Shown: positions 28,989-51,430, counted from the first letter of the stretch. The stretch: 64,000 nt of DNA from Isurus oxyrinchus (GCA_026770705.1 JANJGN010001184.1:1-64000); one strand, 5' to 3'. Made by a program: numbers and translations. The notes: a model not told the origin generated them from the sequence alone.

Positions 28989-29128
28989 TCAAACAGTCTG
29001 TCGACTTCCTTTCACTGTTTGTCTCTCCCAGACACAGACTCCAGTGATAGTGATAACCACAGCCACAAGGAATATCACAGCTCGTATTCCCAGGATCAGG
29101 ATCACGTGCAGAATCTCTCCTCCACTGT
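28989..29128 (-). CDS. Siglec-like gene B terminal exon: TM with intramembrane Arg and short tail, (H)SGGEILHVILILGIRAVIFLVAVVITITGVCVWERQTVKGSRQTV*
   Basis: Acceptor ttctttctgtgtgttctctag; phase 1 matches the upstream Ig exon donor; hydrophobic stretch with CGA (Arg) at 29082-29084; TGA at 28989-28991; minus-strand AATAAA near 28600. Confidence 0.82.
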
Positions 29129-30242
29129 CTAGAGAACACACAGAAAGAAATCATCACTGACTCTCCGCTTTCAATCTCTCACTCTGGCTGAACAATCAAG
29201 CTTCATATCACTGCAACATTTGCTGTAATATTGACCCATCCACTGGGATTCAATGTGGAATGAATGTTTTCACTGTAAACACTCTAAGAGTGGACAATCG
29301 GAACTTTCCCCTTAGCGTGGAACATTGGTGAGAATGGATCATTGTGCTGTTGGACTCCCTGTCCAATGTTTCTCTCCATCGCTGTGTACAGGATTGTGCT
29401 GTAGAAAATTCTGGAAACCTTTAGTGCCGGGTGAAAATCCATCTCAGCCGTGTGTGCGAATCGGGCAGTATCGGGATGGACTCCCCCACGGACTTACACA
29501 CCCCGCTTAATAAACAGTTCCAATCTTTACCCAGAGAGAGGGGCGAATATGGAACTCGCTCCCACAGGGAGTGGTTGAGGTGAATAGTAGGAAATTAGGA
29601 AGTGAAATTGCTTGAAAAGCTTGGAGATGCAAGGGTTAAGTGTTACCGTGCTACCACTGGTGGGAGAGTGTAACTACAGCGTGATGTTTACATAGGCAAT
29701 CCCCATTATGAACATGGACATCATGTGAAAAATGGGCACTGGAAAGCTGAGAACTTGATGTAAGCTTTTCAGCAACAGGAATTCCCTTCCTAAACCTCTC
29801 CACTTTCCTCTTACTCTCAGATACTCAAACAAAATTTCACACAAAATCACGTAAGGAGGAATTGGGACAGGTGACTGGTCAAAGAGTTAGATTTCAGGAA
29901 GGTTCTTAAAGTAGGATAGAGAGTTGGAGAGGCAGAGAGTATCTGTGAGTGTCTCTGTGCATCTGAGTGTCTGTAATAGACTTTGCAATTTCCATATTCT
30001 TCCATAAATATGAAAGGGAACACAAATCCCAGAATCCAGGTCAACTCTCCGGTGCAGCACTGAGGGAGGTCAGGTAATCCACAGGGGAGTATGTGCTAGT
30101 GTGTTTGTTTGTGAGTGTGCCTTTGTGTGTGCTCATAGATGTGGGATTGTGTGTCTGCAGGTGTCTATTTAAGGCTGGATATTTATGTGTGTTTTTGTAG
30201 TGTTTCAATCTGAGAGAGATGTTGAAGTTTGTCTTAACTAAC

Positions 30243-30394
30243 GTTCCACAGTGATGGTTATGAAACCCTCCACTGCTCCATGTTCATTCTCTGAGCACAC
30301 TGATAGTCTCCAGTGTCCCTGGATGTAACGTGAGGAATCACCAACCACAGCTCATTGTTGGAACTTGTTCTGTTCATTGTGATATTCAGATGTC
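30243..30394 (-). pseudogene. Gene B third Ig exon: 5' half missing, 1-nt frameshift
   Basis: Homologous to the 3' half of the gene A 282-bp exons (HLNITMNRTSSNNELWLVIPHVTSRDTGDYQC). tgtgctcagag versus tgtgtggcagag in A is a 1-nt loss. The 5' part is replaced by unrelated LTR-like sequence from about 30391. Confidence 0.85.
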
Positions 30395-30717
30395 AGGACC
30401 GGACTCAACAAGACAGATTGCAGGTTTACCAACAGAAAGTGAACAACAATTTATATTTAAAGGGAAGAGAGTGCTGGTTAATCAGCAAGTGGTCTCTGAT
30501 TGGAGGAGGTGTTGCCATGGAAAATAATGTGTGTGAGATGTAAAGTTTAGACAGCTTGTCTCTTCATTCAGCAACAATCAAATAAAGATCAGTTAACTTC
30601 TATCGACTGTGAAGCACTTTGAGAGGCATGAGAATGTGGACACTGAGAACGGGCTGCACTGTCAGAGGGTCAGCGCTGAGGGAGTGCTGATGTAGAATGA
30701 AGGGTGTCTGTACTTAC

Positions 30718-31014
30718 CTTGCACAGTTAGTACGAGGGTCCGCTCCGATGAAACAGATGGATATCTCACTCTGCAGCTGAGAGTGTGTCCGTGGTGTTTG
30801 AGTGATGGGATCAGGGTCAGAACAGAAGTATAGGACAGAGTGACACCATGCTGAGTTACAGTGTTTGAGACTGATCCACGTACGTCAGTGGGAGTGTCCC
30901 AGGTTAAGACAGGTGCTGCTGTTCCATTGCACGTTGTGTTGAAGGTGCAGCTTACATCCACAGGCTTTCCTGCAATAATTTCAGCAGGGAATATCGTGGG
31001 TTTATCTGTGAAAT
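30718..31014 (-). CDS. Gene B C2-set Ig exon (open, 297 nt)
   Basis: DFTDKPTIFPAEIIAGKPVDVSCTFNTTC...LSCRVRYPSVSSERTLVLTVQ; ag/gt intact; differs from 51134-51430 at only 2 residues by my alignment. Confidence 0.9.
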
Positions 31015-31742
31015 CTAACAGACAGAGAATGGATCCTTTTAGAGAAATATAACGTGAAGCATCAGTTCAAATAGAAATCACAGTCCCACAAGAGAAAGCA
31101 CTTTTACAAGGATGATATCAGATCTGAGAGGTTACAATGATTAGGAGAGAATTTCCTGCTTTGAGACTTTGGTGTTTCTGTCTCTCAGCTTAATACACGT
31201 TCACTCCGAGACACTTGAACTGATAATAGTGGGTGAGGGTGGTGGAGCAGACCAGAGTTTGGAGTGCACTAACCCATCAGTCCCTCAGCGATCTGGGCCA
31301 TTTTTTACTTTGCAATTTGTGGGAGATTGCTGTGTGCAAATTGGTTGCTGTGTTTCCCACATTACAATAGTAACTACAATTCAGGAATCAGCTCATTGGC
31401 TGTGAAGTGATTTGGTCCATGCTGAGGTGGTGAAAGGTGCTACAGAAATGTGAATCTTTCCTCTGTCGCTAAGTCAGACTTCGAGACAGGATTAGAGAGA
31501 TCGATAGGAGTGGATAACCTGATAACATTGATGGACACAGTCAATACATTTAATCATTGATATTAAAGTGAGTATTAGAGGTTGCTTTAGGAGTGAATTA
31601 GAAGCGATCACCAGGTTATTGAGAATCAGACAGTGTGTTATAATAAGCTGTGTTTTGTGTTAATACGTAAACGTTACAGTTTGTGTTATTTCCCATGGAG
31701 TGTTGAATGTGAATTGTTGAGTAATTATAACACAGCACTTAC

Positions 31743-49904: not shown

Positions 49905-50174
49905 GGGGAAGCGGTAGCAGAGAGGTATTGTCACTGGGCTAGTATTCCAGAGGCCCCGGGTGATGCTCTGGGGCCCTGGGTGTGAATCCCATCACAGCTG
50001 ATGAATGGAATTAAAAAGCCTGGTTCACTGATCACCTATAGGGAAGGAAATCTGCCACTCTTACCCAGTCTGGCCTACATGTCACTCCAAACCCAAAGCA
50101 ATGTGGTTGACTCTTAAATGCCTCTGATGGACATGGGATGGGTAATAAATCCCATGAATGAATAATTCGAAAAA
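49905..50174 (+). mobile_element. tRNA-derived SINE inserted in gene A only
   Basis: Flanked by ACTAA repeats (49900-49904 and 50175-50179); the empty site is present in gene B near 33945. Confidence 0.75.
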
Positions 50175-50396
50175 ACTAAACAGGGTCCTGAGGACCATGA
50201 GCCAATGTAGAATGAACTTGTCCACTCCTGTGTCCAGGATTCTCTTCCAACCATTGTGAAACCTTGGGGAGTTCCTTGTGTGTCCTGTAGATGGTCCACA
50301 CTGCAGCCACTGTGCCCCAATGATGGAGGCAGTGGAGATCAAGTCTAATGGAACTACAAACCGTCCAGAATTAAATATTGATATTTCTCTCCCCAG

Positions 50397-50762
50397 TTGG
50401 ATGGTCACAAGAGTGGAAAGGTGACACTCCACGAGAGATGACAGCACAGAAAGGTTCGTGTGTACAGATTCCGTGTCATTACAGTTATCCTTCAAATTTG
50501 GAAAACCAACAACGAGGTGGAGTCTGGTTTAATAATGAGGAACGGGGAAGATCGTCTATAGCCTTTCACTCCAAGGATCACAATCATGAGTTACCACGAT
50601 TCCGCCATCGGACCCGGCTGTCTGGAGACCTGAAAGATGGCGACTGTTCCCTGATTATAAACAACATCAGACGGGAAGATGCAGGACCTTATTATTTCAG
50701 AATAGAATTTGACAGCAGAAATAGTTACAGCTACTATCCTGTAACCCAGCTTCACGTTTCTG
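50397..50762 (+). CDS. Gene A Siglec V-set (sialic-acid-binding type) exon
   Basis: VGWSQEW..GSCVQIPCHYSYP..GVWF..RTRLSGDLKDGDCSLIINNIRREDAGPYYFRIEF..YSYYPVTQLHVS: Siglec Cys pattern, F-strand Arg, G-strand aromatics; ag/gt phase 1/1. Confidence 0.95.
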
Positions 50763-51133
50763 GTAAGTGCTGTGTTATAATTACTCAACAATTCACATTC
50801 AACACTCAATGGGAAACAACACAAACTGTGACGTTTACATATTAACACAAAACACAGCTTATTATAACACACTGTCCGATTCTCAATAACCTGGTGATAG
50901 CTTCCAGTTCAGTCCTAACGTAACCTTTAATACTCACTTTAATATCAATGATTAAATGTATTCCACTCCCATCGATCTCTCTAATCGTGTCTAACAGTCT
51001 ATCAGGATAGTTAAAACAACTCAGTTCTGATATCATCCTTGTAAAAGTGCTTTCTCTTGTGGGACTGTGATTTCTATTTGAACTGATGCTTCACGTTATA
51101 TTTGTCTAAAAGGATCCATTCTCTGTGTGTTAG

Positions 51134-51430
51134 ATTTCACAGATAAACCCACGATATTCCCTGCTGAAATTATTGCAGGAAAGCCTGTGGATGTAAGCTG
51201 CACCTTCAACACAACGTGCAATGGAACAGCAGCACCTGTCTTAACCTGGGACACTCCCACTGACGTACCTGGATCAGTCTCAAACACTGTAACTCAGCAT
51301 GGTGTCACTCTGACCTATACTTCTGTTCTGACCCTGATCCCATCACTCAAACACCACGGACACACTCTCAGCTGCAGAGTGAGATATCCATCTGTTTCAT
51401 CGGAGCGGACCCTCGTACTAACTGTGCAAG
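51134..51430 (+). CDS. Gene A domain-2 C2-set exon
   Basis: DFTDKPTI..SCTFNTTC..PVLTW..TSVLTLIPSLKHHGHTLSCRV: Siglec domain 2 with the extra Cys for the interdomain disulfide. Confidence 0.95.

Follow-up and report, generated by a model that had tools for sequence, protein, structure and literature searches.

A head-to-head pair of Siglec genes in a shark, one working-looking and one disabled, with a second immunoglobulin domain kept alike

The DNA analysed here is a 64,000-nucleotide stretch from Isurus oxyrinchus (GCA_026770705.1 JANJGN010001184.1:1-64000; the window), and it contains two divergently oriented Siglec genes, A and B. The reading that we hold to be probable is that they belong to a segment duplicated in inverted orientation within a large and rapidly turning-over CD33-like Siglec cluster of this shark, with gene A looking like a working gene, gene B disabled and their C2a exons held alike by gene conversion. 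The locus is real, and it is an ordinary birth-and-death locus with a SIGLEC11/SIGLEC16-like layout. A working activating/inhibitory pair, as proposed in an earlier note made from the sequence, was not borne out: as gene B is broken and the signalling end of gene A lies beyond position 64000, outside the window, a working on/off pair is not demonstrated.

The leader ATGs of the two genes point away from each other, at 37673 on the minus strand for gene B and 47226 on the plus strand for gene A, and the measured spacing of 9,553 bp, together with the inverted matches, confirmed the head-to-head arrangement with about 9.6 kb between ATGs described earlier. The inverted duplication runs from the upstream region through the leader and intron 1 to the V and C2 exons, with inverted match pairs within the window at 36633-38277/48213-46640, 31543-32156/50962-50349, 30686-31128/51462-51020 and 33378-33951/50760-50175. 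The sequence ATGATCGGGAAATCTTACTTCCTCCTGTCACTTCT(C/G)CAAG/GT, translating as MIGKSYFLLSLLQ in phase 1, was common to both arms:

36633..38277, minus strand: gene B arm, upstream region, leader and 5' part of intron 1 (inverted match)
46640..48213, plus strand: gene A arm, upstream region, leader and 5' part of intron 1 (inverted match)

The earlier description of the arms as near-identical held for the leader (39 of 40 nt), the C2a exon (295 of 297 nt) and tracts of the upstream region (about 97%); over whole blocks, identity between the arms was 88.8% for the upstream/leader/intron-1 block as a whole, 91.1% for the V' block and 85.5% for the V block. As the two genes are about 10% divergent with several indels, they were rejected as haplotype duplicates.

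Gene A was seen as the following exons on the plus strand:

47226..47265, plus strand: gene A leader exon, coding part
50397..50762, plus strand: gene A V-set exon, intact; Arg of YYFRIEF opposite the ligand-binding Arg in the alignment to sialoadhesin
51134..51430, plus strand: gene A C2a exon, intact
52208..64000, plus strand: gene A stalk, made of 282-nt phase 1-1 C2b exons in a tandem array that runs off the window

The identification of both genes as Siglecs was upheld by Pfam domains (V-set, Ig_CD22, C2-set_2 and Ig_3) and by a phmmer match to sialoadhesin (5.6e-15), in which YYFRIEF was aligned to YNFRFEI with the essential Arg matched; the best solved relatives were sialoadhesin, MAG, Siglec-5, Siglec-8 and CD33. 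The strand-F Arg was also found in both V-set exons of gene B, the first (V, LFRTDF) and the second (V', FFRIEF). Exon translations displayed the Siglec cysteine pattern, with an extra V Cys (SCVQIPC ... DCSL) and three Cys in domain 2, which by analogy with known Siglec structures would form an interdomain disulfide. C2-set domains (C2-set_2, Ig_3) follow the V domain, and a charged membrane residue is supplied by an Arg-bearing membrane (Arg-TM) exon.

Per-exon identity was highest for the models of two lamniform sharks, Carcharodon carcharias and Cetorhinus maximus, and Siglec proteins of several shark species have already been predicted by automatic annotation. These CD33-like or Siglec-like models (XP_041037179 and XP_041037180 of Carcharodon carcharias, XP_072325011 of Scyliorhinus torazame, XP_072409577 of Chiloscyllium punctatum and LOC144671591 of Cetorhinus maximus) share the leader MIGKSYFLLSLLQ and the V, C2a and C2b exons at 83-97% identity per exon, and have three alternative ends (ITIM/ITSM-type, Arg-TM and tyrosine-rich); they are, however, predicted proteins, to which the window adds an inverted arrangement and a decayed member. 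In the Cetorhinus maximus model the order is inhibitory tail, TM-juxtamembrane exon, third-tail relic, leader, seven V exons, C2a and C2b, an exon order that the window repeats on the side of gene A. Its seven V exons alternate in subtype like V and V' of gene B, and the catshark model has three V exons; a V/V' duplication private to gene B was therefore rejected.

With its leader, one V-set exon, C2a and many C2b exons (the first at 52208-52489, with 14 C2b copies, all open, found by tblastn within the window), gene A has the appearance of a working Siglec with a long stalk. Four assembly gaps break up its C2b array with a regular 1,871-bp period, and the 1,666-bp units are 100% identical; these gaps, the suspiciously identical units and a 3' end past the window make the integrity of gene A uncertain. 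We infer that gene A is functional and probably inhibitory, with membrane and tail exons beyond 64000. An ITIM-type tail would be favoured by the base rate of other sharks' models, as an ITIM-type tail follows a C2b stalk in 13 of 21 long models and Arg-TM without C2b occurs in one of the 21. It is very unlikely, in our estimation, that there is no inhibitory/activating opposition here at all, the locus being a graveyard of Siglec fragments or gene A ending in an Arg-TM or third-type tail. Relic exons of three tail types do lie in the window, the gene A array is full of gaps, and a shorter model from other sharks (P0016) carries C2b and Arg-TM together, but the gene A exons within the window are all open with good splice sites, and the count of ITIM-type tails among long relatives also speaks against such an ending.

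Between the two leaders lie tail relics and one assembly gap:

38124..38204, minus strand: third-type (tyrosine-rich) tail relic, about 0.5 kb upstream of the gene B leader
39303..39548, plus strand: orphan inhibitory-type tail exon 1 (LLYANPQV ... TEYAQI), ORF open
40705..40830, plus strand: degraded neutral-TM/juxtamembrane exon (RRKTAMEERVSGTSDIALTPSPLSVKHQ), membrane-span part not hydrophobic in frame
42254..42499, plus strand: orphan inhibitory-type tail exon 2 (LLYTNPQV ... TEYAQI)
42702..42881, no strand: assembly gap, non-coding, 3' of orphan tail exon 2
46701..46868, plus strand: third-type tail relic upstream of the gene A leader, with an in-frame stop

Inhibitory-type tail exons thus lie between the genes, as had been noticed earlier; there are two, both on the plus strand. 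In these relics TEYAQI is present and the proximal LLYANP deviates from the ITIM consensus, and no gene body was found on the plus strand upstream of orphan tail exon 1. The gap at 42702-42881, which is crossed by no exon or reading frame, sits between the two genes, and the head-to-head arrangement could accordingly be a scaffolding artefact in which the contig to its right (gene A) was misplaced or misoriented relative to that on its left (gene B and the tail relics), at a locus where the periodic gaps and identical units of the C2b array show that the assembly struggled. We consider such an artefact extremely improbable: both flanks of the gap match a paralogous copy (39560-40125) in the same order and orientation, the duplicated unit resumes 3 nt past the Ns, and the first copy lies wholly within one contig. 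Opposite the gap that copy has about 122 nt of CT-rich low-complexity sequence, a typical cause of small gaps, and the divergence and indels noted above also count against haplotype copies.

Gene B, on the opposite strand, was seen as the following features:

37634..37673, minus strand: gene B leader exon, coding part (MIGKSYFLLSLLQ, phase 1, donor GTAGT)
33376..33741, minus strand: gene B first V-set exon (V), 366 nt; ORF open, acceptor intact, F-strand Arg kept, canonical donor destroyed
32246..32899, plus strand: intronic fragment of a LINE-like repeat between V and V' of gene B, with very high depth in DNA run X12
31743..32108, minus strand: gene B second V-set exon (V'); both splice sites intact, two in-frame stops
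30718..31014, minus strand: gene B C2a exon (C2-set_2)
30217..30394, minus strand: gene B C2b remnant; C-terminal half only, frameshifted, skipped in RNA contigs
28989..29128, minus strand: gene B terminal exon; Arg membrane span (LGIRAVIF), stop TGA at 28991-28989

An additional upstream ATG at 37695, near the gene B leader, is out of frame. The terminal exon (29128-28989) translates as (D)SGGEILHVILILGIRAVIFLVAVVITITGVCVWERQTVKGSRQTV followed by the stop and leaves a tail of 12 residues without tyrosine. This Arg-TM exon type was conserved in the Scyliorhinus torazame and Chiloscyllium punctatum models, and the exon was spliced in RNA contigs; the activating-type membrane end attributed to gene B was upheld. 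The membrane Arg would be expected to pair with an Asp-bearing ITAM adaptor; a literature search for DAP12/FcR-gamma adaptors in cartilaginous fish returned nothing usable. The locus cautions against taking each Arg-TM exon for a working activating receptor.

Assembled RNA contigs of X1 and X5 contained a V' to C2a joint (31014/31743, GT..AG on the minus strand) and a C2a to TM joint (29128/30718, GT..AG), both coinciding exactly with the predicted splice sites; the X5 contig record comprises 258 nt and has one mismatch per side. Gene B is thus transcribed and spliced, though broken in this assembly. The RNA evidence consists of assembled contigs, not reads, and the contig pieces shown cover neither stop codon; given these properties and the many close paralogs, expression of the 5' half of this exact copy is putative. 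The gene B-private letters of C2a (30835 and 30879) were not seen in X5, X6 or X12 and were seen in part in X1. An X1 contig joining a leader to the first V exon of gene B (loose end 33740) was not counted as expression, since its leader was mismatched at 2 of 29 letters and at the first exon base and the contig is therefore probably from a paralog.

The lesions of gene B were found in three of its exons. The donor of its first V exon is replaced by TCAG/CCTCC, homology to other V exons stops at 33378, and a repeat edge lies at 33377, where the splice donor is lost; X1 and X12 contigs diverge beyond 33377, and one X6 contig piece ends there. The one decent candidate donor, 21 nt downstream (AAG/GTGATG), is in phase 0 and would frameshift into a C2a stop, the phase-1 candidates TGA/GTCAGC and TTA/GTCCGT are poor, and none of the RNA contig joints listed used an alternative donor for this exon. 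In V', TAG (32091-32089) and TGA (31992-31990) interrupt the frame; these two stops are neither confirmed nor refuted by DNA run X12, which represents a multi-copy consensus only. Lacking the V donor, interrupted twice in V' and left with a remnant of C2b, gene B, as it reads in this assembly, cannot encode a lectin-bearing receptor. A leader-C2a-TM product with the V exons skipped would be in frame and is possible. The two members are thus not both intact receptors here, although the stops and the donor loss of gene B could be a null allele on one haplotype and not fixed.

Gene conversion between the two genes is supported for the C2a exon, in which 295 of 297 nt (98% at the protein level) are identical; both differences (30835 and 30879) are nonsynonymous and private to gene B, and no synonymous change was counted over 77.7 sites (dS = 0), compared with dS values of 0.23-0.31 among the V exons. 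In non-coding DNA the identity between the genes was mosaic, ranging from 73% to 100% per 50 nt. A clear tract covers C2a and mosaic tracts lie upstream, but the ligand-binding V exons are not homogenised: V and V' of gene B had dS values of 0.23-0.26 against gene A V, and protein identities of 70% and 84%, respectively, with the differences concentrated in loop regions. That the second Ig domain is kept alike and the lectin domain is not argues against a simple 'same ligand, opposite signal' pairing here.

We regard as unlikely that the genes are a working pair, with a functional activating B and an inhibitory A sharing ligands under gene conversion and the gene B defects being a null allele like human SIGLEC16P. 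Much of the locus is compatible with such a pair: the head-to-head order with 9.55 kb between ATGs against about 9 kb for SIGLEC11/16, the conserved and spliced Arg-TM exon, the homogenised C2a, the ITIM-type tails of most long-stalk relatives and the persisting transcription of gene B. Both V' stops, moreover, are single transitions from relatives' codons (a Trp codon, TGG, changed to TAG, and an Arg codon, taken to be CGA, to TGA). These points are set against three independent lesions in gene B, V exons that are the least alike when primate pairs homogenise their ligand-binding exons, and a gene A tail beyond the window. That the shark independently reached the SIGLEC11/16 design, with an activating partner that segregates as functional and null alleles and of which the null was read here, is quite doubtful; if true, paired Siglecs would have lost their activating partner recurrently in the course of their evolution across 450 million years.

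Returning to the inverted duplicate in a fast-turning cluster, we infer the following order of rearrangements. The ancestral state would have been a head-to-tail array of Siglec genes, for which the exon order of the Cetorhinus maximus model speaks, and the tail exons now between the genes would be leftovers of an upstream plus-strand gene with an ITIM/ITSM-type end, whose front part may have been lost or turned round when gene B reached its present place. Gene B is a copy of the activating type with two V exons, made up of leader, V, V', C2a and an Arg-bearing membrane exon; its first V exon lost the donor to a repeat, V' gained two nonsense codons and C2b was reduced to a stump. Gene conversion at the level of exons holds C2a almost identical, the V exons having drifted apart.

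Paired receptors of this kind are known from other vertebrates. In Xenopus, a non-mammalian vertebrate, CEACAM genes form pairs of an inhibitory and an activating paralog whose ectodomains co-evolve (PMC5112662). They belong to another Ig family, and the parts of that account considered here describe no head-to-head conversion pair. Paired Siglecs kept alike by gene conversion have been described in mammals, and a literature search found no paper on such pairs in sharks. SIGLEC5 and SIGLEC14 are closely linked Siglec paralogs with opposite signalling ends, concerted evolution of their 5' exons and a null allele of the activating member, and Siglec-14, like gene B, has an Arg in its membrane span; unlike the shark genes, which are head to head and whose V domains differ by 16-30% in protein, they lie head to tail with near-identical first two Ig domains.

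The parallel drawn by the earlier note with inhibitory SIGLEC11 and activating SIGLEC16, of which SIGLEC16P is a common null allele, was accurate as stated, since these genes are arranged head to head at a distance of about 9 kb (PMC5701461). Both pairs have fragmented gene-conversion tracts in duplicated 5' regions, and in both the activating member combines a positive residue in the membrane span with a short tail. In the sequence examined, that member does not function. The shark pair differs in homogenising the second Ig domain (C2a) and not the ligand-binding V exon, in the two V exons of gene B and the long tandem C2 stalk of gene A, and in its independent origin in a cartilaginous fish, being known here from sequence. 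As far as the layout goes, it is plausible that the same architecture evolved independently, as seen at one rearranged locus of a large, fast-turning family. This rearranged and partly dead locus has its value as a documented example: the shark family evolves like the mammalian one, by duplication, inversion, exon-level conversion and pseudogenisation, and can fall into the head-to-head layout of SIGLEC11/16.

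Comparison of the window with itself revealed an inverted duplication of four colinear blocks, which carry two Siglec-type genes in opposite orientations, gene A on the + strand and gene B on the - strand.

Inverted blocks found by self-comparison
38277-36633 against 46640-48213, block 1
33951-33378 against 50175-50760, block 2
32156-31543 against 50349-50962, block 3
31128-30686 against 51020-51462, block 4

The block 1 alignment contains a short leader exon common to both arms (ATG ... MIGKSYFLLSLLQ, then G|GT, phase 1), with the leader ATGs at 37673 (-) and 47226 (+) separated by 9,553 bp. 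The extent of 28989-51430 given to the pair in the earlier note fitted the exons, 28989 being the end of the gene B stop codon and 51430 the final base of the second Ig exon (C2a) of gene A. Seven assembly gaps were present in the window, including one at 42702-42881 in non-coding DNA, downstream of the second of two orphan tail exons and crossed by no reading frame. Copy 1 of a local direct duplication (38855-40113) lies wholly inside one contig, and copy 2 matches it until 3 nt before this gap and resumes 3 nt after, in the same order and orientation; opposite the gap, copy 1 has a CT-rich low-complexity run of ~122 nt. As the flanks are colinear with copy 1, the sequence supports the join across 42702-42881 and the head-to-head orientation of the genes.

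By Pfam, the V exons matched V-set and Ig_CD22, the second exon type C2-set_2 and the third, the stalk exon C2b, Ig_3/I-set. Among solved structures the gene A V exon was closest to sialoadhesin (5.6e-15), followed by MAG, Siglec-5, Siglec-8 and CD33, and the Arg of its YYFRIEF motif aligned with the ligand-binding Arg of sialoadhesin. The nearest proteins in a 1.8-billion-protein library were shark models, named by NCBI as CD33-like, Siglec-8/10/13-like or sialoadhesin-like, from Carcharodon carcharias, Cetorhinus maximus, Scyliorhinus, Chiloscyllium and Stegostoma, with per-exon identities of 83-97% that were highest for the two lamniform species (Carcharodon carcharias and Cetorhinus maximus). 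Members of this shark family end in one of three ways: in an ITIM/ITSM-type tail, in an arginine-bearing membrane exon (Arg-TM) and short tail, or in a tail rich in tyrosine. One more Siglec-like V-set ORF, at 10370-10702 (+) (SSCVVIPC ... NCLVRTDSLRAEDSDVYCTQF*), is ~31% identical to the gene A V exon, is without a Pfam match at 0.01 and has a stop codon where strand F ought to go on; it belongs to another gene, as a V exon that has diverged or died.

The gene A exons in the window all have open frames, with AG/GT sites and phase 1-1. Gene A probably works as a long-stalk Siglec.

Gene A exons and gaps in its C2b array
47226-47265, + strand, leader
50397-50762, + strand, V
51134-51430, + strand, C2a
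52208-52489, + strand, first C2b
53392-53598, 55265-55469, 57136-57340 and 59007-59310, array gaps, period 1,871 bp

Its C2b exons, of 282 nt apiece, were found in 14 copies by tblastn, all open (14/14), in an array that extends past the window end. The gaps recur every 1,871 bp and separate 1,666-bp units of 99.9-100% identity (later units being just 82-90% alike), so the copy number in the near-identical part is unreliable, and looks more like an estimate made in assembly than a direct reading. Within the 64-kb window, gene A showed no exon for a membrane span or tail. As a C2b stalk was joined to an ITIM-type tail in 13 of 21 long shark models picked regardless of tail type (Arg-TM in 1/21), gene A is reasonably likely to have an inhibitory end, allowing for the gapped and out-of-window part; C2b and Arg-TM occur together in one shorter shark model (P0016).

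Gene B ends in an Arg-TM exon, translated as (D)SGGEILHVILILGIRAVIFLVAVVITITGVCVWERQTVKGSRQTV*. Identity to this exon was 79-83% at the ends of Scyliorhinus torazame models, and the resemblance to a Chiloscyllium punctatum model was clear (51% over a longer stretch); the Arg and flanking VILILGIRA motif were invariant among the shark Arg-TM ends compared.

Gene B exons
37673-37634, - strand, leader, intact
33741-33376, - strand, V, frame open, donor lost
32108-31743, - strand, V', two in-frame stops
31014-30718, - strand, C2a, intact
30394-30217, - strand, C2b stump, C-terminal half, frameshifted
29128-28989, - strand, Arg-TM, intact, terminal

Three lesions were found upstream of this end. 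In the first V exon the frame is open and the acceptor good; the donor position reads TCAG|CCTCC (TCTG|GTAAGT in the other V exons), and the nearest usable GT is out of frame. Homology of this exon to both other V exons ends at 33378; contigs from run X1 and the DNA run X12 match the intron side to 33377 and then diverge from the window, a piece from run X6 ends there, and a dispersed repeat has its edge at this position. V' retains both splice sites and carries an in-frame TAG (32091-32089) and TGA (31992-31990), where relatives have Trp and Arg, respectively, and of the C2b exon only a frameshifted second half is left. The sole open message of gene B as assembled would be a V-less leader-C2a-TM product. 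An out-of-frame upstream ATG at 37695 (-), 22 nt before the leader ATG, is present in gene B and not in gene A; the great white isoform model XP_041037179 begins in the wrong frame of that ATG (MKYLGVDNDREILLPPVTSPS), which suggests a mis-predicted start.

Expression was assessed with Logan contigs, which give no expression levels, by comparing runs X1, X5, X6 and X12 with 28700-34600. Two GT..AG joints on the - strand coincided exactly with predicted splice sites: 31014|31743 (V' to C2a), in two X1 contigs and in X5, and 29128|30718 (C2a to Arg-TM, with the C2b stump bypassed), in X1 and X5. The X5 record of the former (258 nt, one mismatch either side) contains a V'-specific stretch strongly unlike gene A, and X1 matched the 3' UTR and the intron adjacent to the TM exon in pieces with 0-2 mismatches. 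The two private C2a letters of gene B were seen in part in X1 and not seen in the other runs, and no contig piece shown covered the V' stop sites. One X1 contig lacks a 409-bp insertion specific to gene B and was therefore assigned to gene A or another paralog; another, joining a leader to a gene-B-like first V, was assigned to a paralog because its leader differs. As the joints sit on predicted sites, spliced transcripts of the activating-type form are made from gene B, or from an ortholog or allele very close to it; since the lectin head is lost in the assembled copy, we take gene B for a pseudogene that is still transcribed, or for a null allele.

By Nei-Gojobori counting, dS between V exons was 0.23-0.31 (gene A V against V', 0.256; against gene B V, 0.228). 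In contrast, C2a of the two genes had 0 synonymous changes in 77.7 sites, where ~16 were expected at the V-exon rate, and 2 nonsynonymous changes confined to gene B; the adjoining upstream intron had 3 differences in ~110 nt. Given 0 against ~16 expected, C2a with ~110 nt of upstream intron makes up a recent gene-conversion tract, bounded at one edge by the 409-bp insertion (31134-31542, in the V'-C2a intron). The upstream/intron-1 block is a mosaic, the number of differences per 50 nt ranging from 0 to 16, and the lectin (V) exon is the least alike part of the two genes.

Between the genes lie remnants of inhibitory-type ends, and repeats are spread through the window.

Remnants and repeats
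39303-39548, + strand, orphan ITIM/ITSM-type tail exon 1, open
42254-42499, + strand, orphan ITIM/ITSM-type tail exon 2, open
40705-40830, + strand, juxtamembrane exon, membrane-span part degraded
4122-4549, 17985-18239, 20243-20579, 27629-28257, 38480-39164, 41824-42115 and 51550-52075, 33-bp satellite family
24000-26200 and 44683-45248, LINE-type reverse-transcriptase-like ORFs
9911-10382, 25538-26228 and 32246-32899, related LINE 3' fragments

The satellite, with a further 1.5 units at 30642-30689, occupies equivalent Siglec introns, after C2a (in gene A, between C2a and the C2b array) and before tail exons. Compared with the tail of a great white CD33-like model, the orphan tails showed 69-82% identity. 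Their membrane-proximal Tyr motif (LLYANPQV / LLYTNPQV) has Pro at Y+3, off the ITIM consensus, as in great white and basking shark models, with LLYANINF / ILYANINF in Mustelus and Stegostoma models and the distal TEYAQI motif retained; the Pro may reflect a change of inhibitory signalling in the lamniform lineage.

A relic of a tyrosine-rich tail exon lies ~0.5 kb upstream of each leader, on the same strand as that gene, so the duplicated unit already held the end of a previous gene and the start of the next. A basking shark read-through model has, in one direction, an inhibitory TM and tail, the juxtamembrane exon, the third-tail relic, a leader, seven V exons, C2a and C2b. The window has this order on its gene A side, which indicates that the ancestral array ran head to tail and that the position and orientation of gene B are derived. 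The model P0153 (Cetorhinus maximus LOC144671591 isoform X8, annotated at 1,518 aa) is chimeric: its first part is the TM and tail of an inhibitory gene lying upstream, relic exons, the next leader and seven V exons follow, and it ends in a translated (CA)n microsatellite (HTHTHT...). A private duplication as the origin of V and V' in gene B was ruled out by the basking shark seven-V model, which shows V and V' to be subtypes that normally alternate in multi-V genes.

No paper on shark Siglec pairs was found in the literature; shark Siglec-type proteins are already auto-annotated. In Siglec-16, a positively charged membrane residue and short tail couple to an Asp-bearing ITAM adaptor (PMC5701461), as does the charged membrane residue of Fc-alpha-RI/CHIR-AB1 (PMC4016189), and by analogy intact family members with the Arg-TM exon are probably activating. 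SIGLEC11 and SIGLEC16 lie head to head at a distance of ~9 kb and show fragmented tracts of gene conversion; the SIGLEC16 null allele is long-lived (PMC5701461). The parallel with this layout proposed in the earlier note was borne out, with ATGs 9,553 bp apart here. However, in the primate pair the homogenised exon is the ligand-binding one, whereas in the shark pair it is C2a and the lectin exon is least alike; the shark genes also differ in their multi-V (gene B) and long-stalk (gene A) builds, and their opposite signalling is putative.
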